The position numbers and the translations under genes are program-made. A stretch of 64,000 bases of DNA from Eutreptiella sp. 'Long Island Sound 2002' (Eukaryota > Protista > Euglenida), in contig OZ038378.1 in the NCBI GenBank assembly GCA_964036045.1, positions 182,280,001 to 182,344,000 of the forward strand. Reading direction: 5' to 3'. The number at the start of each line of letters is the position of its first letter. Position 1 is the stretch's first letter. The notes under the pieces are model-generated. The model made no database searches. It was not told the DNA's origin and saw nothing but the letters and a program-made list of their open reading frames with translations. Below are positions 1 to 28,869 of the stretch, piece after piece.

Positions 1-639
1 TGCCTACCAGCGTGGCAGTTCCAGCTGCATTTCCTGGTATCAGGTTTAGCCCATCCTCACTACGTGTGCTTTCCACTGCTGCAGAGTGTGGTGGCAGTTG
101 TGGGACCCTCTCACAGTAAAACGTCTTGGTGCAATCCAGGCCATAAACCCTCATTCAGATACTTAATAAAACAAAAGTGTCAAACCCTCACAAATACACC
201 TGCACTCCCTCTCTGCATTGCACACGCACCAACAACAACTACCCAGGGAAGACCATGCGAACAAAACCCGCGGATATACGGAAATAGGCAGCTGGCACCA
301 TGCCCGCTTGGCCGATTTATGGGCCGTAGCACTGCACCACATACCCGCATGAAGCACAAATGGTCCCTTTCGCAGTGAGCACAGAAGCAGTCACATCTCT
401 TTTACGCCCTCGACTCGAGCCTTGTTTGGACAAGGCGTTGTCTGCGCAAAGGGATGGGATGCGTCCCCTGACCGGTGCCACTCCCTGCACACTGCACACA
501 CACCGCTCAGGGCACTGATCAGCAGTTCGTTGCAGACAGTGTCCATACATGGTCGGCACTTGGGAAGGGAAGGCTGGCTCTCTTTGAGGGGCAGTGGGGC
601 CAAACGGGGCCGTGGTGAATAGTTGGGGTGAGGACCAGG

Positions 640-715
640 ACAACCTCCCGGAATTGAACCCGCGTTTGTACCCCTTTCAGACCTTCCGTGCTTCATTGCG
701 TTGTGCCACGAAATG
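640..715 (-). other. tRNA-like (Pol III A-box/B-box) relic, possible SINE head
   Basis: Minus-strand TGGCACAACGC (708-698) and GGTTCAATTCC (660-650) at tRNA-like spacing; anticodon and acceptor stems do not pair properly. Confidence 0.3.
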
Positions 716-3580: not shown

Positions 3581-3778
3581 TTACTTGCCGCCTCCGATGA
3601 CGGCGCCCGTCTTCTCGTCGTACTGCAGGCCGCCTGTCCAGCCCGGGGGGTGCGGTACCGCCCCGGGCACGTCGAATGCGTGCACATTCTCCTGCGGCTG
3701 CAGCATACGATCCAATTCGCCGTTGGTGTTGTAGGAGGCCACGATGCGCTTCACGAAATCAGGAGTGTGCCTCTCCGC
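3581..3778 (-). CDS. HCAR: HCAR exon 9 (terminal)
   Basis: ctgcag|AERHTPDFVKRIVASYNTNGELDRML...GAVIGGGK-TAA. Confidence 0.88.
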   Translation of the reverse strand, partial: AERHTPDFVKRIVASYNTNGELDRMLQPQENVHAFDVPGAVPHPPGWTGGLQYDEKTGAVIGGGK

Positions 3779-6700
3779 CTGCAGACCAACAGAACGGGCG
3801 TCTCTCGCTGCATCCGATCAGACCACCGCTTGGCTTCTCCCGCTACCCCAAATGGTCTGTCTGCATGCGTGAAATGTCCAGAAGACCAACAAACCGCCTT
3901 CAACAACCTTCGACAACAACCAGCAACAACCACGTTCCTCGACAACCCTCACAAACCCCAGCAATTCTCAACAACTCGAAAACCGAAAGCTCAGATCAGC
4001 CCCAGACGACCCGACACAACCCAAAACAGCCGCACGCGTGGCATCCGGCGGCACAGTACTTGTCCCTCACACCTGTTCTCTGCCCATGTTCCGCACGCAG
4101 TACAGCCAATTCCGCAAGTAGTGGTAGTCCAAAGAGTAACGCCCAAACTCCAGCCCCTTGGGCCCTATCCACTGGAGAATCGTGGGCAACAGATTGGCCA
4201 CAAACGGCGGAGGCCCAGTCGGGGGCCCTTTTCCAAAAAATGCCGCGTCATCGGCCTCGAGCGTCTGCAGCACGAAGGGCTTCCGGTTCCCGGAGTCGAC
4301 GGTTGGCATGACCTCCAGGCGGTCGCGAATGAGGTCGAACATCTGGCGGCCACGGGCGTTACGGACGGTGACGTACTGCGGGTGTTTGGTCATGGGCGTC
4401 TGCACAGGAAGAGGGAGAGAGACCGAGAAGGGGAAGAGGTGGACGTCCAAGACCTTCCCAGGGATAGATATAGTGGCGGGGCTGGTCCCCCGCCCCCAGA
4501 GACCCCCCCAGCCCCCCCCGCACCTGACGAAGTGACGACGACGAAATTCGGCCAGCCAGTTTTGGCCAATTTTCACAACTTTTGACCCTTGAAAAAAAAA
4601 AGACTTTTGGGCCCCCATCACATACATCTTCGAGTTCAGCACATTCCGCTGATCAATTTAATGGGCCTCATGAGATTTTTTGACAGAAAATTTTCTCGAG
4701 ATTTTGGACCACTTTTGGCCCCTTAGACAAAAAATTCGGCGGCTTCAGCACCAAAATTTACCCTTTACCATAAGATGGACAATGGAGTTTCGCGATCGTC
4801 ATTTCGTCATCTCGGGGCCCTCAGACCCCCAACCCAACCCACCCCACCCCACCCCCATCAAAATAACTCGGTCACTAGTATATCCATCCCTAGACGTTCC
4901 CCAAAACCCTCTGCGAGCTTTGACGACACTCGGCACCCATCAAAACCCGCCCGAAAACCCCCTTGACAACCCTCCTCATCACTTCGCAGCCTGCAACTCC
5001 CGTTCACAGCCGTCCACACCCCTACACAAAACCCCGCCCCCCTCCGCACAATTGGGGTGCCTCCGCACAGTTTGGATGTGATAGACGGCACCCTCGGCGA
5101 CTGCAGCAGCGGACAAGCGGGCAACTCACGGAATGGGACCTGGAAATACGGAACTCCCATGTACCCGACAACGATATCCGCCAGACCATTGGTGTAATCA
5201 AAGCAGGACCGGCAGGGCTCTCCGATGACCCCGTGCGCCAAATAATTCGACGGCAGAGAGAAATATGGGATAATCTCATAATCATTTTCGATGGGGGAGC
5301 CCGGGAGATGTTTGATATGCACACAGTAGTCCTGCGGTACAATGACGAGGCTACACTTGGAGATGGGGACGGAGGTCGGAGTATCGGATGCGGATGAAGA
5401 GCAAGACTCTGGACAGGGGCGGGGGGACAAGGGCATCGAGGTCCGTGCCTCTCACAATCACGAGTGCTCGGCAGTTATTGGCATTGCTCTGCGCGCTGCG
5501 GCGTCGTTGACTGCCCCAACTTTGGCGGGTCTTGTCAGCCCACCCGAGATCTCAGAGGTCCCGGACACCAATGAAAAGTGTTGCCACAGAAATACCCGGG
5601 ACCAGTACTGTGCCTACGCTCGAGGGAAATGCCCGGGGACAGGCACACGTTATTTTTGGCCCCGAGCCGGACAATCCAGCCCCCCGTGGGCGCGAAGAAA
5701 TTGCTCCGCCGGGGGGGACGTGGCACAAACGCCATTTCCTGACCCCCCCCCCCCTCCTGCACCCTCGGCTGCCGTGCCGGGACCCTTTCCGAGCCTGTGC
5801 TGCAGATGATGCAGCAAAGCTGACAGAAATTTGAAGAAACTTGAAATGGAAGTGGCTCTCCCGTAGTGAGACCAATCTCTGATGACCTCATTTGCACAAA
5901 AGAATTGGCAATCCAAAAGCGCCAGTGAAGGCAAGAGCGCAAGGCAGCGGCAGCACAGCAAGTGACAACCCTGAGCCAAGCCTCCACCACAAAGGCTGCG
6001 ACATATTGTCGGGTGACGGGTGTGTGTGGAGGGGCCAGGGTTCCCCAACATTTATGACGCAAAACGACCCCTGCAATGCGCTGATCATTTTGGGTGGAAA
6101 ATGGCAGCCCATTTCCCATGCCATGACCACCAACAAACGTCACTTCTCCGTCGGGGGGGAACCGCCAGTGTCTCACCAGTCGCCCCTGCGCATCCGGGAC
6201 TGGTGTACAACGCACCACTCCGACAGCGGGGCAGCAGCCGCATAGACGAGGCTCCTCGTGTGGCCGCAGTCTCGCCGCAAGTGGACACAGCCTCCAGGAA
6301 CACTTCTGTCGTTGTCGCCGGGGGATTCTGGACCCGGCCCACGCGTTGCCTCTCTGGCAGTGAGCTACGGCTCTTGTCGCAATAGTCGAAGCAACAGGCA
6401 CCGAGACAGGGGCACATTTACACGAGAGGAAGGAGGGGGGGGGGGGGCTCGTTTGAGGGGGTCATGACACGGGGGAGAAGAAGGAGACGAAGCCTGCCCT
6501 CGCCTGCTCAGGGAGCATGTGTGACCGTCGGACCGGGGGGGAGGGTGGCGGATGCAACACCCGTTGGCCCAGCGCGCAATGCGCGACGGGGGTAGCGGAG
6601 GGGCCAGGGGGGCACACCTGCATGAACTCATACCCGATGACCGTGTCAGGGGACTTGGAAGCCACATCCAAAAACTTCTGGAGGCCGTCCCGCGGGCCGT

Positions 6701-9700
6701 TGTCCGCGCAGTTGGTACCGATGATGTACAGCTCCTCGAGTCCCAGGTACTTCTCGATCGAGCGCACCGCCTGCACTTGGCATCCGACGCCTACACAACG
6801 ACAGGCATTGGGGTCTGTGGGCGCACTCATCGCAATGGCTTGGGGCAGTGGGGGGTCTGAAGAGAGGAGCAAGCGACTTTCCTCCCTCCCCATCCTCTTT
6901 CAGTTGCTGAAGTGAAAGGCCAATACAAGAAAAAAAAAGCAGCACGGCCTCTTTGCTTTAAATCTTATCCGATGAACAAAGCCAGCAAGGCAGCAACAAA
7001 GCAAAATCGTTCAGAGCTGGAACCTGAAGCAGGTCCTGCTGGGGATGACGACATCGAGAAGATTGGTGCATCAGTGAGGGGCACACAAAGTGGCAGATGC
7101 CCACTTCATGCAACTGCTCCCCGAAGCCTTGGGGCAGGGGGTAGGCTGGGGCCTGAGGGTGGGGCGCTGCTGAGGGTGCTGGCTCTCCCTGCCCCATTCA
7201 CTCCCTCCCAATCCAATGGTCAAAACCCTGCGCCAAATGGCCAATTGGGGGCTTTTGGGGAGCCTTCACTTGGGCCCAAAAGCGCACCGCATCACCATCT
7301 TGAGGAACCCCACCCCTTTGGACCCCCCCCCACCCCCTTCGCCCGGTACCTCACCACGGGTCCCGGGTCAGGGAAAGGGGGGTTTTGGATACTACATTTT
7401 TTCACTTCCTTGAAGTGTTGTGACATGATAACGATGGCAGGCAACATGCTGGACGGGACACACCAACAAGACAGCGCCCCACGTAGGGTATGCTATGCTT
7501 GTCTAGTGTTATCAAAATGAAGCTCAGGATAGGATCACATTACAACAAATTGGAGAATCAAAAGGACTGTTGGCAAGTGATGACAGAAATGACGAATCAT
7601 ACAAAATTTCGCTGGAAGCAAGTAGACCGTATGATGGTTAATTTGAAAAAGGCCAAACAAATGGCCCGGATCACAGACAAGCATACATCCGTTGTTACGG
7701 ACCCGATGAACGTTGAAGTAGCTCAAAGAGAAGTGGTTTTGGACAACAATTTTAATTCGAGTCGAAGACACCTTGAGCCACATTAACCCGCTGCAATAGG
7801 TGGGGTGAATCAATCACAGAGCAATGCAGCACCACATATGGGGATTTCGTGGGAAATGGGTCACCAACGATGCCTCCATGTTGGTCACTATCGATTATCG
7901 CAATGCTTACCCGATGCTGTTGGTCACCTTCATTCAAGAAGCGCATAATTTCTTGTCCTTTCCACCAATGTTTGTAAAGCTTGTCCTTGCAATCCTCTTA
8001 TTGTAGTACAACCTTTTTTCGGCAGCGCGGCGATGAAAGAAGTCACTTTCTCGAAGGATGGAGGAATCTATCAAATAGAGGGGACCCGGTTTCTCCTCAA
8101 CGGTTTTCTTTTTGTGTGGCAATCGTTATGTACCCACTGCGCCAATTGCACACGCGGCTGGGGTTGTAATTGTACCTTGATGATTTTTGCGTCACGTTGT
8201 TTTGTGAATATCTTTGGAACCAAGTGGGAGTGGGTTTTCCACGAATTGAGAAACTTTTGTGCGATGTTCCGCTTGCGGTTGAACTTGGGCAAGTGAGTCA
8301 CCATGCTTTCGGCAGGCGGCTGCATTGGCACCAGGATCGCCTGCCGACGAACCTGAAAATTCTAAAAACAGCCAGATTCAGGCGCCTAAGGTCACTTGAA
8401 CCAAAAAATTCCCGAACAGGCCACCTACAAGTGCCCCGGTCTCCAGACCCTAGAAATACCGAAACTGGGCGGTCTGCTTCGGTCTGCTAGGTCTGCTAAA
8501 ACACAGAAATTTCGAACCCATCCAATTTGATGCCCCCAGTTAGTACTGTTGTAAGACGGGGCGTCTTAGAAAATCTAAGACACATGTAAGACGCATGTAA
8601 GACGCATGTAAGACGGATGTAAGACGCATGTAAGACGGATGTAAGACGCATGTAAGACGGATGTAAGACGCATGTAAGACGCCCCGTCTTACATAATCTA
8701 AGACGGGGCGTCTTAGAAAATCTAAGACGGGGCGTCTTAGATTATCTAAGACGCCCCGTCTTAGATTATGTAAGACGCCCCGTCTTAGATTATGTAAGAC
8801 GCCCCGTCTTAGATAATCTAAGACGGGGCGTCTTAGATTTTCTAAGACGCCCCGTCTTAGATTATGTAAGACGGGGCGTCTGGTACTTGGAATGTGTATT
8901 GCAGTGTGTGATGGATTGAACGAATAATATGATAATAATAGAATGAAAAATATGAAAAAGAGAGGTGTGTAGGACGGGGTTGGTCATACAGATCTAATAC
9001 CATGCAAATCCGAAAGATTTGCGTAAATAATTAATTCCCGGCACAAGGTGTTATTGTCCGCAAAAAAAATGTGTAAAAAATTATTTATTGGCTTCATGCC
9101 TTACGCAAAAATGGGTTCCCGGTCCCATCGCTCCATCCTATCAATCCATCCCATCACTCCATCCCATCACTCCATCTCACCACTCCATCCCATCACTCAC
9201 TTCCTTAACCGGGCCCTCTTCTGCGAAGGTGGTTGCAAACAGGGAAGGTTAGGGAAGGTATGCCTGTTTTTCTCTTGTAGGTTTCGTTTGGTCAGCGCGG
9301 AACGTTTCCGAGATCGATATCAGTGATGTAGTGCAGCGAGCGCCAAAATCAGAGAGGAAGTATGAAAACAATCAAAAACGAGGTTGGGTTAACAAATTCT
9401 CTCCTTTCCAAAACCCGGGCAAGCGACCTGGGGCCTAGCCACAGGGTGGCAGGTGACTGTTTGGCACGATATTGGTTTGTGGTAAGTAGGAGCTTTGTCT
9501 GGACCACTGCGACCTAAATAGACCGCTGTGCTTAAATAGGTGGGATCAGTTACTACCTTTGGGTCAAACAAGATATTGGGTGATTGTAAGTAGGTACGTC
9601 TCCCTTCCCAACCCTGGGCGACAGACCTGGGGCCCAGCCACTGGGTGGCGGGTATGCAGACCTACTTGTTTGAAGGATGGATGCACTAGTAGCACTAGTA

Positions 9701-12700
9701 AAGATAGGTAGGTGCAGTAGCAATTGTTTCGTTTATTTTCGTTTTGTGCTATTTTGGCGCGGCAATTTTCAGCCTAAGAAGCAAACCAGGGTTGGCGCCG
9801 GAATGGAAACCCGAGGGGTCAACAATGCCTATGGCGGCTCTGGTTTGTTTCTGCAAAACAGCAATCTTTCTTTGCGGCACTGATGCCGTGAAGTTAAGAC
9901 TGCCCCTTAGCGCCCTGCATTGGCTATGCAGGAGCGAATTGTCAAGCCCTGTCGTCAGGTGAGTCTGGTATATGAGGTACTGGTTACCCGGGGAAACAAA
10001 ACATTTGTATGCCTGTGTAGGAATGGACTGCAATCCCAGTGTCCAACTCATCCACATTTGTATGCCTGTGTAGGAATGGACTGCAATCCCAGAGTCCAAC
10101 TCATCCACATTTGTATGCCTGTGTAGGAATGGACTGCAATCCCAGAGTCCAACTCATCCACATTTGTATGCCTGTGTAGGAATGGACTGCAATCCCAGAG
10201 TCCAACTCATCCACATTTGTATGCCTGTGTAGGAATGGACTGCAATCCCAGAGTCCATTTTTGGAGGGAAAACAGGCGGATACAAGTGCAATGCTTCACC
10301 CCCCACTATCTCTGTAGGTCCCCCTGCGAGGGGGGACCTTGTCAAATTTCCTTCACCCCCCACTATCTCTGCAGGTCCCCCTACGGGGGGGACCTTGTCA
10401 GGCAGTTACAGGTCAACATACCCCTTAAGCCCCTCCCCCTTGCTCTCGACCCCTTCCCCGACCTCCGGTGCCTTTGGCACTAGCCATTCCCAATCAAGGA
10501 AACAAACAAAAGTCTGTTAAACACAAGGGGGCCACTGGCAGCACCGCTTTCGCAAATTTTATTTTTTCTTTTTTGGGGACTGTCTCTTTCAATGTTAAAC
10601 TGGTGCTGTCTGATGGCTGGGTGCCTGGGCAGGCAGGTTTCACCTTCTTGCCCTACAGGGGGGGGAGGAGAGGACGCCCAGGCACCCAAGGGGTCCAAGA
10701 GAGCATGGTGGGATATAAAAATAAAAACCTGTAAGTTCCTCTCCTGCCCTCCCCGCCAGGGCCACCCCCGCCTTGTTTGCCCCCAGCCTTCGGGTTCCAC
10801 ACATTCAGTGACTTTAACAGGTCAGGGATGTTGAAGACTTTAAAATTTTTTTGTGGTGTGTATGTGTTACGATTCACATGGTTCATTACTCAGGAATTGC
10901 ACCCAGCCCCTCCTGTTTTGCACTCTTTTGTGACGGCTTTGTAAAGGAATTTGTTCGGGAAAACCTCAGCATAGGCCACAGAGGACAGACTCATTGACCT
11001 GCAGCACTGTCGAAACCCCCTCTCCCTTGCGGTGTTGTGTTGTGACGTTGTGCCAACAGGTGTTCTGTAGAGTTCCAAATTTGTGTGTTGCATGTCAGCA
11101 TGTATTAGCAAGAAGTATTGACAAGAAGGGTGAAAGGAAGGAAGAGAATACTTGCAGCAAAGTACATGGATGCAAGCAGTTGTAAAAAGAGATTAGAACA
11201 GGAGAAGGGAACAACACCACATAATAGAATGGGATGTTGCTGATGTGAAAGTGGACACGGCAAAAGTTATGGTGCAGCCATTGTTGCTGTGCACCCTGCT
11301 ACAGGGTGCACTTGTGTTGCTTTGTGACGATGTTGTACACTCTTGCCTTTCATAGCAAACTACTGCATTGATTGTGCCATGCTTGTCCTATGTATAGGAG
11401 CTCTATATGTCTGCATTTCAGCGTTGTGAGGGCTGCTTGTGGCCTTTGGATGCTGCAGGCTGGTGCACAAAGGGGCGATTGCACTGTGCTCCTTGTGGTT
11501 GCCCGTTCAAGAATGATGGATCTTGCCCCCGTTGCAACCAAGTAGTGTGGGACGACAATTTACAATACTACGTTCCACTCTTGCAAGACACACAGGAAGA
11601 CATGGTGGCGGCAGACGTGTCGGACTCTGGGTCTGACAGTGGGTGGGATGCCCCATCTCTACAATGGTCACCGACACCACCACCTTCGTTCCATGAGTTT
11701 GAGTCTTCCTCGGACTCCGACTTTTGAGAGGGTCCTCAATGCCGTTTCCATGAAGACTGGCACACTTTGTGTCGAACACGGTGTTTTTCAACACCACTGC
11801 TTGCCCCACTTGGTGGGGCCATTTGAAATTGTGCTGTGTGTCTTTTCGTAGTTGTTGCACAGGCAATTGATTGACGTTTGGAGGCCTAGGTACTCTACCC
11901 CCCGGGGGGGGGGGTCTGCGTGCTGTTTTTTGGGATTTTGGGTGCCCTCCGGAAACCCCCCCCCTGTTCGGGGCAAAATTTACCACTGTACGGGCCATTG
12001 TGCGGGGCGGACCTTTTTTGTTAGAAAACCCTCAGCAGGGCATTGCGTAGTGACCCCAATCACCAAAATATGTTCAGAATGTATACCACCAATAAGCCAA
12101 ATGTTAGCAGAGACATGTCATAGCTAAGTTGGTACATGCGGATATTCACAGGGGTGAAGTCATGGGTTCAATTCCCACCTCTGGCGCTTTTCTGGCGCTT
12201 CTTCTGGAGCTTCTGGCGCTTTCTCTGGCGTTTTTTCGGTATTACAAGTGCACATGACATGCATTGGACACAATCACAAACAACCCGGAACCTTTTCTGG
12301 CGTTGTTTTCTGCGCTTGTGGCGCTTTTGTTGGCGGTTTTCTGGCACTCCTGGCGCTTTTGTGGCGCTTTTTCTGGAGCTTCTGGCGCTTTCTCTGGCGG
12401 TTTTTCAGTGTTACAAGTGCACATGACATGCATTGGACACAGTCACAAAGAACCCGGAACCTTTTCTGGCGTTGTTTTCTGCGCTTCTGGCGCTTTTTCT
12501 GGCGCTTTTTCTGGCGCTTCTGGGCTTGTGCAGCATTACAAGTGCACATGACATGCATTGGACACATGCATTGGATTTCTTTGCTTTGCGCAAGGGTTTC
12601 ACTGGTTTCACTGGTACAGCACGCTGGCAGTAGTAGTGGTGGGCCAATAGTGGATTGGGCCTGTTTTCTCGACATCACCTGTAGGCCTCGAGTGCCCTGT

Positions 12701-15700
12701 TACACATTGTTGGCAGCCGTGGGCGGTAGCTGAGTTGTTAGTACATTGTAGTGCACAGGGTAGGATTATTGGATGTATATACCCTTGGAGGCTTGTCAGT
12801 AGCACAAATGTCATTGCCCTTCGTGGAGGTGTTTGGCCCATGGACGAGGAAACCCAAGACTTCGTCCTCGGGTTTCTGGTGAAGCATTTCCATTGCTACG
12901 TGGAGTTTATCCGTCATGAAGGCCACGACGCCGCTCTAGATATCATTGTGGATGACATTCGTCGATCAAAAAACAGTATGCAATGTGTCCTACCTTGGCC
13001 AATTTGTGTGCCACTTGTTACCTCTGTTTGTATGTTGCATTTTATTAGGTGCTTGTACTACAGCTATGACATCTATGTTCATGAAAGGGAGGGATTGCAC
13101 ACATAAATTGTCAGATTTTTCGCTAAGAAAATTGGATTTTGGTCTTTATGCCATCCATGAAAGTCCCCGTGACCACTGTAAGCAGTACCCTAATGGTACA
13201 TATACCTGCTTTCAGAGGTGGATGCACAGGTTCGAACCCTGTTGTATACATTCCAGTAATCTAGGGCAAACTAGGTTTGAATCCCAGTTTTTCATGTGGG
13301 CTCACAAAAATTTTGTGTTGGCACCTCTAAAAACTCAGCACACCCGCCCCCCCTTGGGGGGGGGGGGGGCAGACCCCCCTCCCCCCAAACCCCTTAACAG
13401 GAACTCCGCCCTTAGGAATCAGCTGCAAATATCTAAAGGCAACCAAGAATGGACAGCATTCATGCAACAGGGGTTAACAACATTTATCCCAAGGCTTGTA
13501 ACTAACAGCGATGATCCACTGAGATCCAGGAAATGCACCACCTATCCAGAAAGTTGCTCATGTATGGGTCTGCGGCGCTGTAGGGCAATGGAATAGTGTG
13601 GGGTTGTGGGGCTACTGTGTCAGAGAGTTGTGCACATGCGCACTGTTCTTTGCACTGTCAGTGAACACTTGTCACAGGTTCTCTACCGACAGACAAGCGT
13701 ACAGCACGACAGTTGGTGTTGGACATGCTGATCCGTGTTTGGCGTAGTGGCGTACCGTTCCTCAGTCCAACATACCAGACAGTGGGCCACGAGTGCACCG
13801 TTGATGAGGCCGCACCGCCGAAATACCTCCTCCCATGGACCCCGCACTGTGTCAAGTGCCGTGGCGAAGTGCTGCAGCAATATGGGAGGATAAGGTACAC
13901 TGAAGAGTCAGTCACACGGCAGCCCATAGCTCTAATTTCGATGCGCTGCCACCGATGTCTGGCATTGTACGGCTACGATACAGTAACAGTGGGTGAGGGT
14001 GAGGACGAGGAGGTGTACAGGTTGTCACTTCCGAGAGATCACATTGTACTGGCACGCAATGTGTTTGGCCGCCCATATGTCCATGAGTTACAGCAGCGCA
14101 TAGTATTGCAGTTTGCAAGCTTCCAGGCAGAGGGTGGTGTCAAGGAAGTACCGCACACCAAACTCCAAGAGGTTGTTTTCTTGGATTGGTGCATGCGGTA
14201 CTACCGTGAGGCGCGAGGGCAGTCCCTTTTTAGGTGCCCAGATTTGCACACTGTTGTCTCAGAGGTGACAGGGTTCCTTCGTCTCAATGGCTTGCCCAGT
14301 AAACATCATCAGTGCTCTGCATGTGAGCCCGCTCATCTCAATCACATTCGCGGTATGCCAACGGTACGCCCAGACATAAAACGACATACAGCAGAGGTAT
14401 ATGATAGGTGTGTCGTCGTGGATTGCATTTCAAAGGTGTGCAGACGGGTTTGCATGTACGGTATTCGGCAGAATAAGCGTGACCCGTCAACTGGCCTGCA
14501 CGTACAAGCACAGTGTAGCAAAGCACCCGTGCCTGGTACGTGCTTCTGTAAAGAACATTCCACCCCTGGGCACGTGGTGTACACACAGGTGCTTGAAGGT
14601 GATGTTGGCAGTGATGTCATGGAGGCATTGCCAGAGGCTTCATCAGGGGACTCTGAGCATGAAACTACAGATGCCTATAGTACTGCACAGGAGGAGGAAA
14701 CTGCTGTGTCACGGAGTCCACAGCCCACATTGGACACAGAATACACATCTATGCTCCATGAAATTGCTCTTTCTCATGCTACAGGTGCCACCTGCACTCC
14801 AAGCACAACAACAACGCAACAGTCACAGCAACAGCCACCACACACGGCAGCAGGACAGGGGCGGGGAAAGGGTGGTCACCAGGGTGCAAAGCAAAAAATG
14901 CGCCGCAAAACAGTGTGGTCCGTTTCTGGTCAAGGATGCAAAAAGAAGGTTGTCGTTTTCACTGGGTTCACCAATGGTTTGATGACAGTGTCTCGCCCTT
15001 GTACATTTGTTGTGCATTTCGACGAGATGGTGGGCGCTGAGGGGTCCCACCAAATTCTGTACAATTTGTGGTCTATCTCGACCCGCCACAGAACAGGTGG
15101 AATTTCTTTTGATTGGATTTTGTTTGATTATGCATGCAGGCTTTCGCAAACATCTGCCAAATACAACGTGCTGTCTGATGTGCAGTGCGTGTTGGACCGA
15201 TTTCATGGTACCGTGCATAAATGTCAAGGGTACGGGATGTCGCAATTCCCAGAGTTGTCGCGCGTGAACAGCTCAGCGGCTGAACAAGGCAACAGTACGA
15301 CAGGTCGCTATAGCTTTGCTGCTAACCCCAGGGACGCGGACACTTTTTATTTTTACATTGCCAACTGCTTGGAGGGCCGCAACAGGTACATCATTGGTGG
15401 CCATAAGGCATCTGCTATAACCGCGTTGGGAGGTTTGCAACCAGTCGAAGGAGTACATGATGATGAAGACCCAACGTCGTGGGTCGTAGATGTTGCACCA
15501 CTTGCAGGCTCTAGCCAATTTTGCACTTTTGTGGCCCGCCTGGCCAAATTGTACCACCTTCGAGCTACGTGGGCTGCAGACCCGTCTTATGTCCCCTTTA
15601 ATCCCTTCTCCGCTTTTGCTCATAGGGACAGTGTGAGGAATGTGCCAGCCCTCAATCCGCATACCCATGGTTCTGCGCGTAGTACTTCCAGTACCGTGGC

Positions 15701-18700
15701 GCGGACACCTGCCGCATCTGCTGCATCTACCGTTTGCACAACTGCAACATTTGGTAGCCCTGCAGTGACTACATCCAGTGCTACTGCACCATCTGCTGCA
15801 CCTGTGGTGAATCCCACCTCTGTGCCCATGGAGACCATTTCTGTCAGTAGTGATGATGATATTTTGACAGCCCCAGTGCAGGACCCTGCAGTCCTAGGAG
15901 TGGTGAAGACTGAGCCTGGTGACAATGTCCCTCCTTCCCTGGGCACAGGTGCTTCCGCTGACGTGCCGCAAGACCCCTTTTCCACTGCACAGGACGTGTC
16001 TACATCCCCCCTTGTTGATCCCTATGCACGCAGCCCAAGGTTGTCTCCCCATGCATCATTGGATGACATTTCTTTTGGCGAGAATGATGCTTCGATAGCT
16101 GCAATGGAGGACACGGACCCAGAGGTCCTTCGGCATTTCAAGATTGAGCCTGATGTCAATGTCCCTCCTTCCCTGCACACACTTAGTTCAGCACGTGTGA
16201 TGCGCAAACCCTTTTTCACCGACCGGCGCACGTTTGCATCCCCCTCTGCACATCCTTATGCACGTAGCCCAGCATCCTCTCCCCACGTGTCCGCTTCTCG
16301 TTTTGACATCAGCCCTGACGACCCCTCCACTGGTAACGCTTCTGATGGGGCCCCAAGAGTGGTCCGTGCACGTGGCAAAAAAGCCAAGGTTTACAAGAGT
16401 TCCAGTTCACGCCCTGGCACTGTTGTTCAGGCTGCTGCAGGCCCCGATGCGATTTCTTTTGTACATAACTACACTCTGCTTGGAGATGTGGACCGGGGTC
16501 ATTTCACGCGAACACAGCAGCCTATTCCTCTACAATCCGGTGTATGGGACTACGCGGCCGAGCCTGAAGCATTTCAGGCCCTCTTGGCCCCACCCTTTGG
16601 CATGCAGGAAGTACACAGTAAGCCCAACATGCTCCAATTGCTGCAGAAGGTGAAAGGGAAACAACTTTTTTCTGTGCGCAGACTATGGTCCACCCTATTT
16701 GCAAATAGGAAGCACCCCCCCTCCATGTCACAATTCAAGGCCATGCTTGTCCATCTCCACCAGGCACATTTGGTACTGCTTGTGATTGTGGGTGCCAGGG
16801 CCAGATCAAGCGCATGTCTCATGCTGCCTGCCCCCTGCCCTGCCCCTGCTATTCTTGTTCAGAACAACATTACGGTGGACGAGTGGGATGCACGTTGCTC
16901 TGCAGATTGCTTGTACTCCGTGGCATTTGACCAAAGTTCAGTGCCTAAGCCACCACCTCGGAGGCGGCGGTAAATGAACCATGCCAACTTGGCAACCCCG
17001 AAGCAATGGCAGAACATTTGGCATGGACCGGAAGTCTGTTCGTCAGTGGTGCTTTGCTGCCTTTTTGTGTCTCACACATTAGGGACACGATGCTTGATTG
17101 CCATATGCATCAACGCCCAAACTGCTGCGTTGTTACTCCAAAATGATTTGTTGCAAAATGGGTGCAGAAGTAAACAACAACACCCAGCGCCAACAATCAT
17201 GCCTGGGGGTCTCCCACCTCAGTACCCTAGAGGGCTAATGAGGCTTAACATCCGAAAATGGATGGTAACATGGGACATGCTCAGAGTACAGCTGCTACTG
17301 CCACCATAAGGGAGATGATGCTTCAGTGCCATATGCATCTATGCCCAAACTGCTTGGTTGTTACTCCCTGCAAAATGGGTGCACAATTAAACAACAACAC
17401 CCAGCTGCAACATTTGGGCCTGGGGGTCTCCCACCTCAGTACCCCACAGGGCAAACAAGGCTTAAAATCGGATGGTACCACGGGACAAACTCAGAGTATG
17501 GCTGCTACTGCCACCATAAGGGAGACGATGCTTCAGTGCCATATGCATCTATGCCCAAACTGCTTCGTTGTTACTCCCAAATGATTTGTTGCAAAATGGG
17601 TGCAGAATCAAACAACAACACCCACCTGCAATTGTATTGGGTGGGGTCGGGGGGGGGGGGGGGCTCCCAAGGGACTGGTACACAACCTGCTTATGTAGTT
17701 TCTCACCCTGTACAGGTGAAAAAACGAAATTTCCGAAAGTGATTTTTTTGATATCCCGGCCACTCACAATGACCATCCAAGCTGTGTAAAGCATGTTTTG
17801 AGCAGCATTTAGGTGTTTTCCACCCTATTTGGGGATTGAGTGTGTTTTGGGGGGCATCCCATCTACAGTTTGTAGACACTGTCTGCCCCAAGTGTCTGCC
17901 CCAAGTAGACGCGGCCTGCTAATTGTAGACACCGTGCGCATGTTGTAGACGCGAAGTGCCAATATTTGGGAAGGGGGCCGAAGGCCCCCTTCCCCACCTA
18001 ACGGCCCGGTGGCAGCGTTCACCCGCGCACACGGGCATGGTGTTCTGTGGTCTGTAGACACTGTGCACCACAAGTAGACGCGGCCTGCTAATTGTAGACA
18101 CCGTGGGCATGTTGTAGACGCGAAGTGCCAATATTTGGGAAGGGGGCCACCAAACGGTCCGCTGGCAGCGTTCACCCGCGCACACGGGCATGGTGTTCTG
18201 TGGTCTGTAGACACTATCTGCCCCAAGTAGACGCGGCCTGCTAATTGTAGACACCGTGCGCATGTTGTAGACGCGAAGTGCCAATATTTGGGAAGGGGGC
18301 CGCAGGCCCCCTTCCCCACCAAACGGTCCGCTGGCAGCGTTCACCCGCGCACACGGGCATGGTGTTCTGTGGTCTGTAGACACTGTGCACCACAAGTAGA
18401 CGCGGCCTGCTAATTGTAGACACCGTGCGCATGTTGTAGACGCGAAGTGCCAATATTTGGGAAGGGGGCCACCAAACGGTCCGCTGGCAGCGTTCACCCG
18501 CGCACACGGGCATGGTGTTCTGTGGTCTGTAGACACTGTTTGCCCCAAGTAGACGCGGCCTGCTAATTGTAGACACCGTGGGCATGTTGTAGACGCGAAG
18601 TGCCAATATTTGGGAAGGGGGCCGAAGGCCCCCTTCCCCACCAAACGGTCCGCTGGCAGCGTTCACCCGCGCACACAGGCATGGTGTTCTGTGGTCTGTA

Positions 18701-21700
18701 GACACTGTGCACCACAAGTAGACGCGGCCTGCTAATTGTAGACACCGTGCGCATGTTGTAGACGCGAAGTGCCAATATTTGGGAAGGGGGCCGAAGGCCC
18801 CCTTCCCCACCTAACGGCCCGGTGGCAGCGTTCACCCGCGCACACGGGCATGGTGTTCTGTGGTCTGTAGACACTGTGCACCACAAGTAGACGCGGCCTG
18901 CTAATTGTAGACACCGTGGGCATGTTGTAGACGCGAAGTGCCAATATTTGGGAAGGGGGCCGAAGGCCCCCTTCCCCACCAAACGGTCCGGTGGCAGCGT
19001 TCACCCGGCGCAGGTAGGGTGTTTGGTAGTTTGTGGTTTGTTTCCTACATTTGTATTATGTCCTGATCTTGTTCAATCCCATAGCTTTTTGACTGAATAA
19101 AACTGCACCTGTACCTACTCTAAGACACCTTGTTCTTATTAATGTAAGAGGCCCCGTCTTAGATAATCTAAGACGCCCCGTCTTAGATTTTCTAAGACGC
19201 CCCGTCTTAGATTTTCTAAGACGCCCCGTCTTAGATTTTCTAAGACGCCCCGTCTTAGATTTTCTAAGACGGATGTAAGACGCATGTAAGACGCATGTAA
19301 GACGGATGTAAGACGGATGTAAGACGGATGTAAGACGGATGTAAGACGGATGTAAGACGGATGTAAGACGCCTCCAAATCTAAGACGCCCCGTCTTACAA
19401 CAGCCCTCCCCCAGTAACCCAAACCTGAAAATTCTGAACTCAGCCTTACAGTGGCAGCAACAAAGGATGGGCAACCATGGAGGAGCAACACAGCAGCACA
19501 GGCAGCGTTGTATGGAGGCTTGCCGCTCCAAAAGGCATGCCGGCAGAGCCACATGATGAGATGGTGCAGCATGGCATTGCGGGTACAACAGTGATAGACA
19601 GAAGGAAAGGATGAGGGAAGGGTCCCATGCTGGGAAGCTTTTGATGTCTGGGATGGCTCTGAAAATTTCCCTCAAAATTGCACATGTTGAAGTCCCAGCC
19701 TCGTCGCCGCCGCCCCCCAACAGACATCCGACCAGCCCCCCCTCCCTTGGCTGCGTGAGGCCACGGCAATCCGGGGGGGCTACCACGGTTCAATCTCAAC
19801 TAACCGAAGTAACCACCACATGGCTCAAATCTGCCCCATACAGCGCAAATTCCATGGGCTGCACTCATAAACATGCAAACCCCCCCACCTATAGCCCCTC
19901 CCAGGGGCTACATGATTCTAGATGAATGCCAGAGCTGAGGTGGGGGGGGGGTATACGTGTGTGTGTGGGGGGGGGGGGTTGTAGGTCAGGATATTGTCCA
20001 ATTTTGCCTTCGGCGCTTCGCACCATCTGTTGTTTGCTGTGTGTTAAGTTTCCGCTTATTTTTCCCTCCCGGATGTTGATTTAGAATTGCCCCACACCGT
20101 GCATGATGACAGTGATGATGATGAGGGTGATGACCCTTTTGATGAACTTCATGATCCTGGCAATGGAGATGAGGAGGACGCGAACAATGACATCGCCACT
20201 CTGGAGCAAGGCATTGCTGTGTTGCAGCTCTGCAATCCACGGCTGATATTGCAGACCCATCACCAGACATGGGTGAGGAGGGGAGCCACGCAGTATGGTG
20301 GATCGATGCGTGGTCTTCCTATGCATCCTCCATTGTTGCATGGCCATTGGCCGGCTCCAAGTGGCGTTCATCGAGGCACGCATTGTGGACCCCCCGAAGA
20401 AGAACGCTGAGGCCGTGCAACCGGTTCTCTATCGGGCCTGCACGGGTGTGAAGTTTGGTGCCTCAGCGACACCCGACGGGCTATTTCTGTTGTGAAGATC
20501 GCCGAATCATTCAAAAGACGTGGTTACATCTGGCCCACACCAGATGGCAGCCACATTCATCTGCGCGAGCTCCCAAACTATAAATATGAGCCCACCTCTT
20601 TGATTTGGTTCAGGGCTAAGCGTGTCCTTGAAGCAGACAAAACTGCTGACCAACCTCCAGCAAAAAAGACAAAGGCACAGCCCTTTTTGATGCAAATGCG
20701 GAAGAAGTAATTGGCAGCAAACTATCCTGCAGTTGTGGCCCACACGCTTTGGTGCTCCGTATCTTTGCACAGCTCAGTCTTTGAAGTTTGGTGAGAAGGG
20801 GGGGCTATAAGTCCCTGGATGACTGCAAAGAATGGAGGGGGGGGGGTTATAGGTGGTGGTTGGAGGCTTACGCAACATTGATGTTGGATCAAGTGCCGAT
20901 TCCCTTTCTTGTTCAAGCAGCTGGGGAGGGCTACTGCTCAGTCCGGCTGTGTGCACTCAAATGGGCCCAGCGGGGCACATGCCCTTTGTCTGCCACGTGT
21001 GGTCCCTCCCGAACGAGCGGGCTTTGAGGACCCCTTTTCGAGGAGACCCCCCTCTTTACTTGGGCGGGGGCGGAGTTGGGGGGCGGAGTTGGGGGGCGGG
21101 GGAGGAGGTGGAGTGGGCCAACGGTGGTGTTCTCCCACACCACGTAAGCCTCCCTCCCTCCGCTTCGCTGGTTGGGTCTTTACTTGTGCCCAATTGGGCA
21201 CTAAATCCCTTAGAAAAGCCTGATACATGGGACAAAAGTATCCCCCAATGAGCTGACGGCCACGGTATGCCAATCCGAGGGACACTGCCTGTGCACTCAC
21301 TGCCTTCCACTGCCCCGACAACAATTCGAAGGGGCTACCAATGAAAAGCAGCTTCTTCACATCGGGCAACGCTTCCAGATGTGCCAACACGGAGAGGTTG
21401 GGGCTGTAGGAGGGCTTAACCCCTTTGGACGCAATAATGTCCTCCACCGTGCGGGCCACGACGGGCTTTGGGGTGAACCTGAGCACGAGAACAACGGTAG
21501 GGCGCAGGGCACCCTGACTTCCCGCTCATCACAGCACTGGTACGGTTTGATGCGACGGCGGTGCCCAACTGATGCCCGAACATCCAGGCCCTACTGCCAG
21601 CCCTAGCACCGGCCCTCGCCCCAGCACTTGCATGATCCCAACCATCACGTGTGCAAAGACAATGCCAGAGCCCAGCAGCGCACAATGGTTTGCGCTCGAA

Positions 21701-24700
21701 GTTTGCAGCAAAAAGTCCCGTGGTCTACTGAGAAGTTCGTGCCAACAACAACAGAAAACTAAAAGTGTGTTCGCGGTTCTGTGGCTGGGGTAGGGCTGCG
21801 CGTGTCCCTTGCCCCCCTCCAACAGTACCACTGGGTGGAGGTCCCGGTTCCTTGACCGACGCTCGTCAACTTCACTCCGCCCATCCTCAAGTCAGACCGA
21901 TCAGATGGAACTGGAAGGCGCACCGTCCCCAAATAAGAAATGGATTTCTGTGTCTTCAGCAGCCGGACCAAGAGAAGCAATTCTTCTTTGAGGGGGATCG
22001 TGCATGGGTCGGACATTTGTCGACCCAAGAGGCTCCAAACGGGCTGCCGAAGACGGGTTGGTTGCTGGTAGTCAGACAGGTTGGGAAAGCTCCACGTGGT
22101 TGACAGGATGAGGGCGTCCCTACATCCGCATTGTTGTGCATATGTTCAATGTCTTGTTGCATGTGTGTCATAATGGGGCATACCCAGAATGCAGCAAGAC
22201 GTAGCTCCGACCTGGAGGAGCTGCTTCCGAGGCCAATCCTGCCCCTACTCGGTCTCTGTTGGCCAGCTCTATGCCGAGTCGCGGGCATAGCCATGGCCAT
22301 GGCTCAACACCGCCCTGTACGGACTGATGGCCCTCCCCCAAACCCCCTTCACGACGTGACTCTCCCAGGCCCAGGACCGGACAGTCCCGGTCACAAAGAG
22401 CCGTCGCTTGAGAACAGAGAGTGTGGCGTGGGCACGACCTGTCCTCCGGATCGCTCTGCACACAGACCACGGCATCCACAGCCCCGGTCTCGAGCATCTG
22501 GATCGCCATTTGTGTGACGATCCCCGTCCACTGCGGTGTGCCCTTTGCGGACGCGTACCTACAGAGCACGGGCACAGCGACGACGGGGGATGGGGGCGGC
22601 CCCCCCGGAAGCGGCCCCGAGGTGCACGGGGGAGGGGACTCCTCGGCTGACGCGAGGTTCCCCCCCAAACTACCTGTCGGCTGCCCCCCCAAAAGTGCGG
22701 CTCTTGCGACGGGAGGGTTAGGGGTTAGCGGGTCAGGGCCTGCCTGTGGCCTGCCCTATCCCACCCCTGGCCCCCCGGTATGTCGCGGCGCGTCGCAAGA
22801 GCGGCCAGGACATTAAAAGACGCCAACCCCCCCCAAAAGTGCGGGGGACGAATTAGGGTCCAAAGTGGAGAGCAGGTGTGTGGCTATAGGCAGCCATGGA
22901 CCAAATTGTCCTTCTGGCGCCTTTGGTGCCCGTGGACTCCTGAAGCCGGTACCTTTGGCAACTAACTGTTGGCCGGAGGTCAGGTGTGGACCCGCCACTA
23001 AGCTCCAGCCACGCCTGCCTTCACACGGCCTTCAATTCCAACTCAGTTCCATTCGTGTTCGTGTCGCTGGGACAGTTCCATCCAGTTCTGCTCCCTCTCT
23101 GAAAATAGGGTCAGGGCGGGGGGGGGGGGGGGTAAAGTGCCTCGAAGTGTTCCGGGAGCATGGCGTTCCGGGGGCACAGCGTTCCGGGTCCAAGTGTTCA
23201 AGGGTTCTGAAGGCCAAAGGGTCTGGGGGCACAGTGTCCCAGCGGGCCCTCTGGTGTGGGGCGGTGGTTCAGGGGATCCACGGCCTTCCCTCCCTTCGCC
23301 CGGGGTATGACGGCCTTCGTCGGCGTCCCGGTCACCTCAGCTTCCCCGGACACCAGAGGCTACATCTTCTGGTCTTCCCACTGCACGGCGCACGAAGAAC
23401 CGTCCATATCCCCCTGGCACTGCCCTGATCACGCACCCCCACAGCCGCTGGACACGCAGAAATCACACCCGTCGGGCTGGGGGGTGATATCCCACGAAGG
23501 CTTCGCATTCCTGGCGTACAGCACCTCTTCGGCGACGCCCGTGTATGCCTCGTCCTCTCGCCGGCCCCTGCCGTGCACTTGCTCTTCTAGGGACTGCATT
23601 AGAAAGGGGTCGGACTGGAGAATGGGCTGCGATTGCCATCTGTGCGCTGGGAGTGTGCGAGCACTGCCACACACCCACCGCAGCAGGGGCTGACTCCTGC
23701 GGATTCATAACTATGCTGGAGAATGGTAGTGAATGACCACTGGGCCTGGAAGTTGTTGAAAATGGATACATTTCTCATTCCTCAGCCCTGATACCCCCTG
23801 GAGCTCTGTCTGGAGACTGTGCCGTGCCAGAGGATGTGGTTAACAGTGGCCTTACGTTGACGCCTTGAATGGACTACAGCTCCGATAGCTCAGAGTACAA
23901 TAAAATATGTTGTGGCCCGGTTTAACCCGCTGTTTAGACAAAAGGCCTAAGCTACGACGAGTGGTCCGAACGCCCCACTCCATCCTCATGACAGAGACCG
24001 TGAGGGGGAAGACGGGGCGTCATGGCTGCTGTGACTCACTCAAGGTGCTCCGAGGGTGGAGGGTCCATAAAGGACAAGAATGGCCCAACCACGTCCAACA
24101 TGACCCGGAAGCGCTGCAGTGAAATGGACGAGTCCTGCAGAGACTGTCCACGAAACTCATCCTCTGAAGGCTGACGAGAGCCTTGTGACTGTAGCCGGTG
24201 ATATACCGCGATTGAGACAAGCAGGTCACACAGAAGACATGGCGGTGAATACGGTTACACTCACGAATACCGTGCCCATACATCATTTCTGGAGCACCTT
24301 CGCCGCCGCAATGCGACACGGGTGTCCGTCTGGGGCCGCAGGAGGTACGTTCCCTAACTCCGCAAACAGAACCACGATCATAGATTCGCATCTCTGGTCA
24401 CAGCCCCCGCTGCCAAGGTCAACACCTGTGCGTACACCAACGGGCCAAGCAATACAGCATAACCCAATGTGAAGCCCGACGGATTCCAGAAATGGTTGGT
24501 TTGCAGATTGTTTCTTTAAGTTCTTGCTTCAGTTGGCGTGTCTACACCGCTTTTTACTGACTGAACACTCATCAGAAGAGATCATGTACTGAACACAATA
24601 TCCGTGGTGAATGGCCTGAAGTGAAGCCAAAAGTCAGGAGTTGACACTTGGGACACTGGGAGAGCGGTGTTAGGGGATTCTTCACAGCGCAAAGGCAGAA

Positions 24701-27700
24701 GAAAACAACAAGTGTGGCGAACAGGCAAGCCATGCGGTCCCAGGAAGGCATGGGATGCGACCAGGTGTTCCAGGGCGCCGCTAGGAAGCGCTCTTTCCTT
24801 TGGAACTACAGACCAAGAACACTGGACACGCACGCCGGAGATATGGCCGCAGGGTGTACCTCACACTTGGACATGCCGTCACCGATAAAAGCGCAAGACT
24901 CCTTCACGTGCGCAATGAGGTATGTGTCACACAGTCCGCACCGGGAGCACAATTCTTTGGCTGGGTAGCGCTCACGCGGAGTGCCTGGTTTGATGCCCTG
25001 GGATCGGGGGGGCTCAGTCTCCACTGCCATGGTCGCCCATTGAGGGGCAACGTCGATGGGGTCCAACAGCATCATGGAGGGCCTTCTGCTGAGGCACAGT
25101 AGCAGAAGGCAATTGGGTCGGGGCAACATATTTGTGAAGGTGGGGAGGGAGGGAGAGGGAGAGAGGAACGGAGGGTGGGGGTATGGAGGTTGGTGCAAAG
25201 TTTGGTGCCGCCCACCCAGGGACGGTTTATGTGGCTGCTGTGTCGACATTGTAAACTCCCGCCCCAAAAATAAGAACTAGTTCTTAGCTTTGGTCCAGCT
25301 GGTGGCGGTATCCGCGGACGTCATTATTTTTCGGGGTGGTTCCTATTTAGTTTCTTGACCATGGCACCTCCAAGAGAGTCCAAGGTAGTTCTTACCTTTG
25401 GCACACTCCATGGAAACCCCGAGGTGGTTCTTATTTTTGGGTTCGTTTTTATTTTGGGCCCGGTTCTTATTTTTGGGGCGGGGGTTTACCATGCCACATG
25501 TGGCTTGGGTGGTGGACACCATGAAAACCTTGAGTTGCAGTCTGGTCCTGTGGCTGTGGACACCATGCAAGTCCTGCCGCGCTCCACGGGTCACAGGCCA
25601 TATTGTGGTCCGGGTACTATGCTGAGAAGCAGCCTTTGCTGCCCGCTCATCACTGTCCAGTGGCATGAGCGGTTGGTGCCCACGCTTCAGCGGCTGCACA
25701 CCGGGTCACAGTCAAGAAGTCACCATCTTTGGAGTGGTCACCTCAGCCCGGAGGGCATGCACAATACTTCAGGCCTCAGAAGTATCCAGACTGGGTGGCA
25801 GGCAGGAGGGAAATGGAGGGGAATAGGGGAATGGGGGAAATGGGGTGCAAACGGGAGAAATGTGGGGGAAGTGGGGACACTAGGACAGTTCAAGGGAAAA
25901 GGGTGGAGGAGATTGGTTAAAACGGAACTACTTCTTTCTACAACCGGAAAATTTGTTAAAATTCTACTGGTGCAACCGATCCCCCGGCGTCCAGGCATGG
26001 TGTGGGTCGGGAAGAGCAACAATAATCATACCACTCAATAAAATGCTGAATTTTCCACTCTTTTTGTCTCCAATCCCAGTAACATGACTAATCTAGAACA
26101 ACACTGAAATGCAAAACGGTGGCATGGTGCATGTCCTCTTTCATATCTTGCTGCCGTTGGTTGTGGACCCAGTTCAGTGATAAAAAGCAACGGTGAGCAT
26201 CACAGGATGTGGCTAGAATGGCCAGACACGGCGCGCAGTAGCATGCAACAGAAGTGGAGTTGCTGATATTCCACCCCGCTAAACCCCCCCCCCCCAAATA
26301 ACATACCCCGGGGTACGGTATTTGCCTGACGCTCAATAGGGCCAGGGGGGTACACTATTTGGGGGGGTACACTATTTGGGTGTTTCGCTGTCACCCTCAC
26401 CCTCACCCCTGATGAGGCTTTTGTGAATGTGTGTGTCACAGGGGCTGATGGAGCTGGAGCAGCACCTTCTGCTGCTGTGTCCCACGCCTCCAGCAACGTC
26501 TCCAATGTAAAGAGGCAAACCACAATCACCACTTTCTTCAAGTGAGCTACTGTGCAGTGATGTTGAGACCGTATCCTAAATCTGGTTGTGTTTCGTTTGC
26601 TTGTATGTGATGAAAAGGGGGTACAGTATTTGGCAAAACGCTTATTAAGCCAAGGGGGGTACACTATTTGGGGGGGTACACTATTTGGGGGGGGTACGCT
26701 ATTTGGGGGGTGGGGTTTAATCCAAAATGCAAAAATTGTCCGTTGCAACTGCAGCTGGGAACTTCCAACAAACGTCCCACAAAAAAAAAACTCTCACTCA
26801 TGCAAAAGAGACATTTGTGGGCGACAATATTAGTACCCATGCCTTCCTTGCATTGTAATGCAGGTGTTTGCTGCGGGTCAAATACCCTCGCATGCTCAGC
26901 AAAAGGGGATTACCAGCACTGCGCACGCACCGCTATTAATTCGTAGTGGCTTCTGGACGGTTGCTACTAATTCTTGGTGGCTTCTGAATGGCTTCTGTTT
27001 CTTTCTATTGTCTTCTAGATGGTTGCTATTATTTCTTAGTGGGCTCTGGATGGTTGATGTTAATTCCCACTGGGCTCAGGCTTCTTCGGGCTCCGGTGCA
27101 ATATTACTCTTCAGCCCCCTCAGCTTATGCCCCACCTGGGACTCGAACTGGGGAGCCCTGCTGCAGGCGTCATTCGCCACATGGCAGCTCAGCCACGTGA
27201 CCTCGTCTGCTGTGTTTGGTTTCGGGCGGATTGAAGAACACAGGGTCAACTCAATATTCGCATGCACAATGCCTATGGCTCTGATCACAAACATGAGACT
27301 CGAACGAAGGGTGCCCGGATGGTCCGTGCCCATTCAATGGCAACTGCACAGTACACGGCACATGCCCAAAGCCTTGACGCATACCTCCAGCGCTGCCACA
27401 CTGCGACCACGGCCACTGTGAACACCCCTGCAAACGCCCACAGCGCCGTTGGGATGGCGCCGAGCCCAACAGCGTCGCTGACCACACGGGGGGTGGAAGC
27501 GCCAGGGGTCTCTGGCAGCCCCCCCAGGGCCGCAATGCTCTGGGGCCTGCCAGGCTGGGCATGGGGGCCAGCACGGAGGTGCACGGGATTCCGGACGGCG
27601 GGCGTGAGCATCGAGGCTGAAGCCGTGACCGTGGGCTGGACGTAGGCAAAACTGGCGGGGCTGGAGCTGCCCAAGTACAGCGCCGTGCAGCAGAACGAGA

Positions 27701-27797: not shown

Positions 27798-27805
27798 GCA
27801 AAAGA

Positions 27806-27830
27806 TCTGGAGAGGCATGTGCGAGGGGCC
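27806..27830 (-). promoter_or_regulatory. Candidate spliced-leader (trans-splice) acceptor / outron end of HCAR
   Basis: Pyrimidine-rich ...cctctccag|atcttttgcATG; the AG lies 9 nt upstream of the ATG. SL use is inferred, not shown. Confidence 0.45.
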
Positions 27831-28869
27831 GAGAGGGGGCAAAGGCGACAAAAGCCGGTAAACACAGGCAGGCCCCGGAACTGTGTTTGTTCACGGTAGT
27901 TCAGGACTGCTGACCGTGGAGGCCTATTGGTGCAGAACGCAACCTCTGAAAGCGTGTTGCCGGGGTCCACATCAGACGGGGCAATGAGGCAACTCGTAAC
28001 ACCCCCCATCCCCCTTGCGCATGCACGGGCAAAGTCAGTAGAACGGCTCAGACCGCGTATGTGGCAGAGGGGGGGGAGGCGGGGCACACCATTCAACTGC
28101 TAGGCCCAGACTAATATGCAGCAGACAGAGGTTCCTATTCCAGTGATTTGCTGCCTGGCACAGTGGCCCTTGGGCAATGGGGTTGATCATTGAGTTGGGT
28201 GGGATCAGGGAAAGGGACTTGTCAATACCAAACATGAGTAGAGTAGTGAGCCAAGCGATGGGATAGTGCTTTGACCAAAACGGCCCCGTGAAGCGCTTGA
28301 TGCTGCTTGTTGCTTATACACGATGTATGGGGATGGCGTGCAAACCCCTCTCTCTTGTACAACGGCCCGCAATGCCTTGCCTTTTGCCCTGGCTGCGGGG
28401 AGGAGGGGGTTGCTGGGTGTTTTGAAGGTGACAAAGCGCCTTTTGCCCAGAGGGCTGTAGTTCGACAAGACCCTGGTTGAGGCAAAAGAAACAGACTTCC
28501 GGCGCGTTGCACCACTGGCCTGCCCGATGACACGCCCACTGACAGAACAAGATACATTGACACATTGCCAAAGGAAAGCCTGAAATCTACCATCCACAGG
28601 TACCAAAAAGGGCCCAATCCTCCACAGGTTCCAAAAGGCCCTTCCACACCGGCCATTGGCATTGCATTGGCTATCATACACAAATACGGACAAATGTGCT
28701 GCATCCAGCCAAATGCCTCCCATGCACCAGAGGGTTGTCGCAGTTACCCCAAGGCCCGTCCTACATGCCTTCAATCCTATCTTCTGTGCCCTCGTTTTCG
28801 TCTTGCAGCTGTCATAATACGGGGCATGTACACCATGTTTCCTTCCGAGGGGACAAATCAAAACAGGCC

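Follow-up and report, generated by a model that had tools for sequence, protein, structure and literature searches.

A probably autonomous KDZ transposon from a young, very divergent family in a euglenid genome

Positions 182,280,001 to 182,344,000 of contig OZ038378.1 (assembly GCA_964036045.1, Eutreptiella sp. 'Long Island Sound 2002') form a stretch of 64,000 nucleotides, referred to here as the window. Within it, an element of 10.87 kb spans positions 8541-19407/8, bounded by inverted repeats and a duplicated target site and containing one long open reading frame (ORF). The element is best understood as an autonomous cut-and-paste transposon of the Kyakuja-Dileera-Zisupton (KDZ) superfamily and a member of a young family in the genome of a marine protist, a reading to which a probability of about 0.9 is given. 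Its transposase is a very divergent member of the superfamily, as supported by profile-profile, feature and fold evidence. The protein very probably consists of an N-terminal CxC5-type cluster, a split RNase H-fold DDE core (D237...D472...E524, with a DRFH motif), a long disordered linker, and a conserved C-terminal domain. The ends of the element are composed as follows.

8534-8540, no strand: left copy of the target-site duplication, CCCCAGT in the 7-bp reading; the 8-bp reading adds the C at 8533
8541-8545, plus strand: 5-nt left tip lying outside the inverted repeat, TAGTA in the window copy and CAGTA in five other copies
8546-8570, plus strand: left 25-nt perfect terminal inverted repeat, starting CTGTTG and holding a TAAGACG/CGTCTTA palindrome
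19379-19403, minus strand: right 25-nt perfect terminal inverted repeat
19404-19408, plus strand: right terminal 5 nt, CCCTC, with C after CCCT in 6/6 insertions
19409-19415, no strand: right copy of the target-site duplication, CCCCAGT

The perfect 25-bp inverted repeats described in the original prediction are confirmed, and a 24-nt search for them returns 2 sites in the 64-kb window and none in 100 shuffles. The sequence CCCCCAGT, said to flank both ends, is indeed seen at 8533-8540 and 19408-19415. Five further full-length insertions (loci L001, L003, L005, L006, and L012) have the same termini, and each has a duplication of its own in the same register. Because these five copies lie at different loci, the duplication is not a product of chance, and the expectation that other copies would carry their own target-site duplications (TSDs) is borne out. 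The left terminal 5 nt are part of the element, since their bases are constant across copies at different loci.

The copies are very alike. Eight loci were retrieved, among them the window's own (L004), which differs from the window within the element by a single base pair at 9392, outside the ORF; a candidate difference inside the ORF was rejected, the one at 9392 being the only one. Copy lengths range from 10,412 to 12,248 bp, mostly owing to repeat copy number. The window copy, L001, L005, and L006 have retained an intact ORF; elsewhere the ORF has a frameshift near its start (L003), is split in L012, and is truncated in L002 and L011. The intact ORFs differ at 18-20 of 3246 nt (~99.4% identity), with a ratio of nonsynonymous to synonymous polymorphism (pN/pS) of 0.6-1.1. 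Judged from these sequences, divergence and pN/pS together appear as the pattern of neutral drift since very recent insertion, and the proposal that the element is recent holds. The proposal of a new family holds as well: the protein cluster at 90% identity comprises 26 sequences, all from assembly ERZ25074135, and among 5.8 billion proteins only copies from the same genome fall within 90% identity.

On whether the family is still moving, the evidence points both ways. Several observations weigh against present mobility. A pN/pS near 1 is also expected of dead copies. Neither an empty site nor an insertion polymorphism turned up in the metagenome-contig scan, where both the empty-site check suggested by the original prediction and the query with the left terminus gave 0 matches. 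In two estuary metatranscriptomes, the only contigs along the ORF are short (150-270 nt), of low depth, and free of splice joints; weak transcription could produce them, but so could carried-over DNA. The foremost alternative, favored by these observations and by the broken ORFs in four loci, is that the family is extinct, its copies being recent fossils whose intact ORFs reflect youth. That alternative deserves serious consideration but is the less probable one. Four of the six complete insertions combine an intact 1082-codon ORF with perfect termini, and neutral pN/pS between copies is expected of active families too. Runs with two coded organism labels also contain the stretch at a high share, as do three estuary metagenomes; 4.8-kb contigs from the two labels match 12.5-17.3 kb of the window with 12-17 differences, and near-identical contigs of this kind argue against extinction. 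Finding the stretch in estuaries agrees with a euglenid host such as Eutreptiella. The young family of autonomous transposons may still be active at present.

The length of the target duplication is most likely 7 bp, with C as the last base of the element. A 7-bp register is exact in all six insertions, whereas an 8-bp register is exact in four (the window, L001, L003, and L006). L005 and L012 break the 8-bp reading at one position, where a left T faces a right C. It is unlikely, though not negligibly so, that the same element makes an 8-bp duplication and ends on the right in CCCT (4 nt), following the habit of Zisupton and Dileera. Published KDZ elements have TSDs of 8 bp (Zisupton, Dileera) or 7 bp (Kyakuja) (PMC12730594), the L010 copy of a second family described below fits 8 bp with 5-nt ends, and both mismatches to the 8-bp reading are C/T, the commonest type of change. 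These mismatches, however, fall at the identical position adjoining the right end, where the base after CCCT is C in all six copies. The 7-bp length is favored because two mutations of one base in such young copies, at ~0.3-0.6% divergence, are far less likely. It also makes the ends symmetric, with 5 nt outside the inverted repeat on each side (YAGTA...CCCTC, the more likely composition), and gives a symmetric target context in which a pyrimidine precedes the duplication in 6/6 insertions and a purine follows it in 5/6. Readings of 9 bp for this family were rejected.

The original prediction thus stands as to the duplication itself but probably not as to its length of 8 bp, and its placement of the repeats 5 nt (left) and 4 nt (right) inside the ends is probably off by one at the right. 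The label "Zisupton-like" is similarly divided. Membership of the KDZ superfamily is borne out by the evidence below, while the Zisupton part rested mainly on the 8-bp TSD. With a 7-bp TSD more likely, the label loses its main basis, and the element may or may not belong with Zisupton.

The direct PF18758 or CxC match that the original prediction called for fails at Pfam thresholds for the window protein, and the Pfam results are the main points against the KDZ assignment. No family matches the whole ORF at E<=1, the isolated core is without any match at E<=10, and scans of the N-terminus and C-terminus give nothing above threshold. CxC5 stays below its cut-off of 26.9 bits, with 13.7 on residues 36-103. 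Even the closest divergent relative, P0019, reaches only 13.5-17.8 bits for KDZ, against the PF18758 gathering threshold of 26.6 bits. Word-indexed searches with the protein and with an alignment found almost only copies from the same genome.

More sensitive comparisons place the protein among KDZ transposases. An exhaustive phmmer search over 1.84 billion representatives gave 44 matches. One relative found in this way (P0024, E 6.7e-22) carries CxC5 at 38.4 bits; another, P0054 from the amphioxus Branchiostoma belcheri, carries PF18758 at 31 bits; and P0057, likewise reached by phmmer, is PF18758-positive, as is P0086. Seven family members that all fall short of Pfam thresholds were combined into a profile, which hhalign aligned with a profile of 17 PF18758-positive animal proteins at a probability of 99.87% and an E of 7e-32 over 148 columns. 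The alignment spans the RPC, YDxAC, DRFH..H..C, and VN(S/T)xxEQ blocks. In the Atlas feature search (score 0.96, 212/256 features shared), every family-bearing neighbor is KDZ, CxC5, or CxC6. A MAFFT alignment of whole proteins plus fragments (A2) was too gappy for use.

The gene and the parts of its product are listed here.

13725-16973, plus strand: transposase gene of 1082 codons when counted from its first ATG; frame open from 13713
13818-14021, plus strand: CxC5-like N-terminal cysteine cluster, residues 36-103 (PF18718, below threshold; the corresponding region of relative P0024 above it)
14421-14423, plus strand: D237, candidate for the first catalytic Asp (VVVDC), located on beta-1 in the model
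14574-14882, plus strand: low-complexity disordered linker in the catalytic core, ~residues 288-390, with a predicted local distance difference test score (pLDDT) below 50
15126-15128, plus strand: D472, proposed second catalytic Asp (FDYAC), directly after strand beta-4
15195-15206, plus strand: D495-R-F-H498 motif after beta-5, aligning with the invariant D..H of PF18758-positive proteins
15282-15284, plus strand: E524, proposed catalytic Glu (AAEQ), on a helix, aligning with the invariant E of NTEVCEQ
16485-16907, plus strand: uncharacterized C-terminal domain, ~residues 925-1065, also conserved in the second family

The uninterrupted ORF of the original prediction is confirmed at 13713-16973. 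The candidate residues it named, D237, D472, D495-R-F-H498, and E524, lie where it placed them and fall in blocks conserved across relatives. A structure model of residues 215-575 has a pLDDT of 71.8, with ordered parts at ~90; it replaced a first model that lacked the D237 strand and was poor (pLDDT 56.5). In the predicted fold, D237 is on the first strand, D472 past the fourth, D495 and H498 past the fifth, and E524 on a helix. The predicted core has an RNase H-like DDE layout that is split by the linker, and the acidic residues probably serve as its catalytic residues. The linker is not conserved with P0019, and the C-terminal domain has no match in Pfam or Atlas.

The 32 best matches of the model in the PDB (VIA-align) are all DDE integrases or transposases, at Z 5.9-9.2. 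The top matches are foamy virus integrase (Z 9.2) and ASV integrase (Z 8.9), with 13 chains at Z>=8. Foldseek gave no match against the PDB at E<=0.001, and the closest shape neighbors in Atlas are mostly KDZ/CxC clusters. Hermes, the P element, Transib, and RAG1 are also listed by the fold search, which together with the lack of a direct Pfam KDZ match could suggest another superfamily with 8-bp TSDs or of CxxH type (hAT, MULE, CACTA/Plavaka, P) whose likeness to KDZ is the shared RNase H fold, but this is highly improbable: the hhalign match singles out PF18758-positive proteins and takes in family-specific motifs, no hAT, MULE, or CACTA match appears in Pfam at E<=1 (nor a dimerization domain or BED-type finger), feature and shape neighbors are mostly KDZ/CxC, and retroviral-type cores outscore the hAT, P, and Transib chains (Z 5-6.3; Hermes only 6.3).

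Inside the termini, the KDZ element contains arrays of short repeats and two further internal parts, with a small ORF of doubtful standing between them.

8576-8682, plus strand: array of ~9.7 direct 11-nt units (TAAGACGCATG)
8675-8881, no strand: array of ~8 palindromic 24-nt units (TAAGACGCCCCGTCTTA core)
10374-10868, no strand: non-coding-looking module of 495 bp, 84% identical in nucleotides to the second KDZ family (L007 9019-9491)
11407-11727, plus strand: small Cys-rich ORF of 106 aa, of doubtful coding status, overlapped by short metatranscriptome contigs
17893-19012, plus strand: internal satellite with a 169-nt unit (higher-order 322/491), 85-89% identical to the second family
19145-19271, no strand: right array of ~5 palindromic 24-nt units
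19265-19370, plus strand: right array of ~9.6 direct 11-nt units (TAAGACGGATG)

Both types of array at each end are built on one heptamer, TAAGACG. Counting both strands, the element holds 49 copies of this heptamer, all except one confined to its outermost 340 nt on the left or 260 nt on the right; the other 53 kb of the window has two. The two ends are not mirror images, because the 11-mer arrays sit on the same strand at both ends and are thus direct rather than inverted. The satellite holds 28 same-strand GTAGAC motifs that resemble the end motifs of both families and, in all DNA compared, is found only inside these elements. The 106-aa ORF has no support from Pfam or Atlas.

From this anatomy a course of transposition can be proposed. 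The transposase, perhaps through its CxC domain, would bind the ~49 TAAGACG motifs in the first 340 and last 260 nt and pair both element ends. It would then cut 5 nt outside the 25-nt inverted repeats and join the ends to staggered target cuts, most likely 7 nt apart, whose repair would produce the flanking duplication.

Zisupton and Dileera resemble the element in being DNA transposons bounded by terminal inverted repeats (TIRs), with a KDZ transposase of ~1000-1400 aa and a TSD of the 7-8-bp class; elements of this type occur in algae, fungi, and animals (PMC12730594, PMC9297572, PMC8226300). They differ in their 8-bp TSD, where 7 bp is more likely here. Zisupton genes are described as multi-exonic (PMC9297572), in contrast to the single uninterrupted ORF here. 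The protein here also lies below the PF18758 threshold, and TET/JBP cargo is absent. Kyakuja, a fungal KDZ group, shares the KDZ transposase, probably the 7-bp TSD, and the 5'-CA start, but it is reported to have CA..TG termini and no TIRs (PMC12730594), whereas a perfect 25-nt TIR is set 5 nt in here, within CAGTA...CCCTC. The element does not match Kyakuja as so described: the TSD probably fits, but a TIR is present and the termini differ. At the level of function, Ac/Ds (PMC3260210) and En/Spm are similar in having short TIRs and many subterminal copies of a transposase-binding motif that are arranged differently at each end. These belong to unrelated superfamilies (hAT and CACTA, respectively), and the motif, the grammar of palindromic 24-mers, and the 5-nt unmatched tips are particular to the family described here.

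A second KDZ family in the same genome is represented by P0019 (1069 aa, ERZ25074135), which is 29% identical over the full length and 37% in the best-matching core segment. P0019 and the window transposase are homologous in the CxC region, in the block around D237, in the core, and in the C-terminal domain (~residues 925-1065). The P0019 element lies at L007 ~7930-15396 and has 4-5 unmatched terminal nt followed by CTGTCG, with a flanking duplication of its own; the duplication fits 7 or 8 bp at L007 and 8 bp at L010. Its repeats are inverted arrays of the 10-nt GTACGACACA and 55-nt repeats with the palindrome CGACGCGTCG, so that the motif differs from that of the first family. The end design of a tip followed by CTGTYG is a trait of the lineage, since it is common to both families.

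The transposase genes of the two families have no detectable nucleotide similarity. Two modules are nevertheless common to them: window 10374-10868 with L007 9019-9491 (84%), and window 17893-19012 with L007 13768-14782 (85-89%). On sequence grounds, this suggests either that the families exchanged modules recently or that each picked up the repeats independently.

In each family, one copy is accompanied by a large duplication of its flank. In L002, a copy of the first family, the left flank (1283-4657) is repeated 6 bp past the right end (14317-17683) over 3.4 kb at 99.6% identity. In L009, a copy of the second, it is repeated 0 bp past the right end (3460-5949 and 12893-15372) over 2.5 kb at 100% identity. 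The repeated flank is followed by a left-end remnant of 6 nt in L002 and 856 nt in L009, and there is no target duplication. By analogy with the re-replication that Ac induces in maize, the element ends look to have mediated a local duplication at these loci, although unequal exchange or a mistake in the assembly may instead be the cause. It is conceivable, if rather improbable, that the two families found a separate euglenozoan KDZ branch with rules of its own, namely cleavage 5 nt outside a CTGTYG-initiated inverted repeat, modules moving far faster than the transposase diverges, and ends driving kilobase-scale host duplications such as those of L002 and L009.

Few eukaryotic DNA transposons have been studied as little as the KDZ elements, for which no structure or biochemistry is known to us. 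The element described here is of a known KDZ kind and not a new kind of element, and what it adds is a host lineage and an unusual end design. A literature search found no paper mentioning both Zisupton and euglenids, and the family is a new, very divergent one in a host group without a KDZ report in the searched literature. Experimental work can draw on several copies with intact ORFs, a gene in one exon, precisely mapped ends, and a clear candidate for the binding motif. The family lends itself to the first biochemistry on any KDZ transposase, and it might also yield a tool for euglenid genetics. It also carries a warning for annotation, as Pfam thresholds overlook this branch entirely.

Further observations concern the wider set of loci and the rest of the window. 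No ends were found within 10 kb at L011, where a fragment of the element lies amid long terminal repeat (LTR) retrotransposons. Ty3/Gypsy-type polyprotein ORFs (RVT_1, RNase H, rve, chromo) at 1-7655 and 17421-22268 flank this truncated KDZ copy, an arrangement that is a nest of transposons. Element ends could not be defined at L008, which holds a third, degraded KDZ-like lineage (P0022); near it, at 1-1742, is a 52-nt tandem repeat of 33 copies based on a palindrome (CAAATATTTG...CCGTCAAATATTTGG). Within the window element, contig depth at 11894-12681 is 5-10x that of the rest, with many loose ends, in DNA and RNA runs alike, and repeats of the CTGGCGCTTTT type at 12576-12639 recur in other, partly expressed sequences. 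An Rfam scan of the whole window matched no family. Outside the element, two adjacent same-strand ORFs at 27251-28096 and 28205-29050 (minus strand), each of exactly 281 aa, could represent either a repeat or two genes in tandem.

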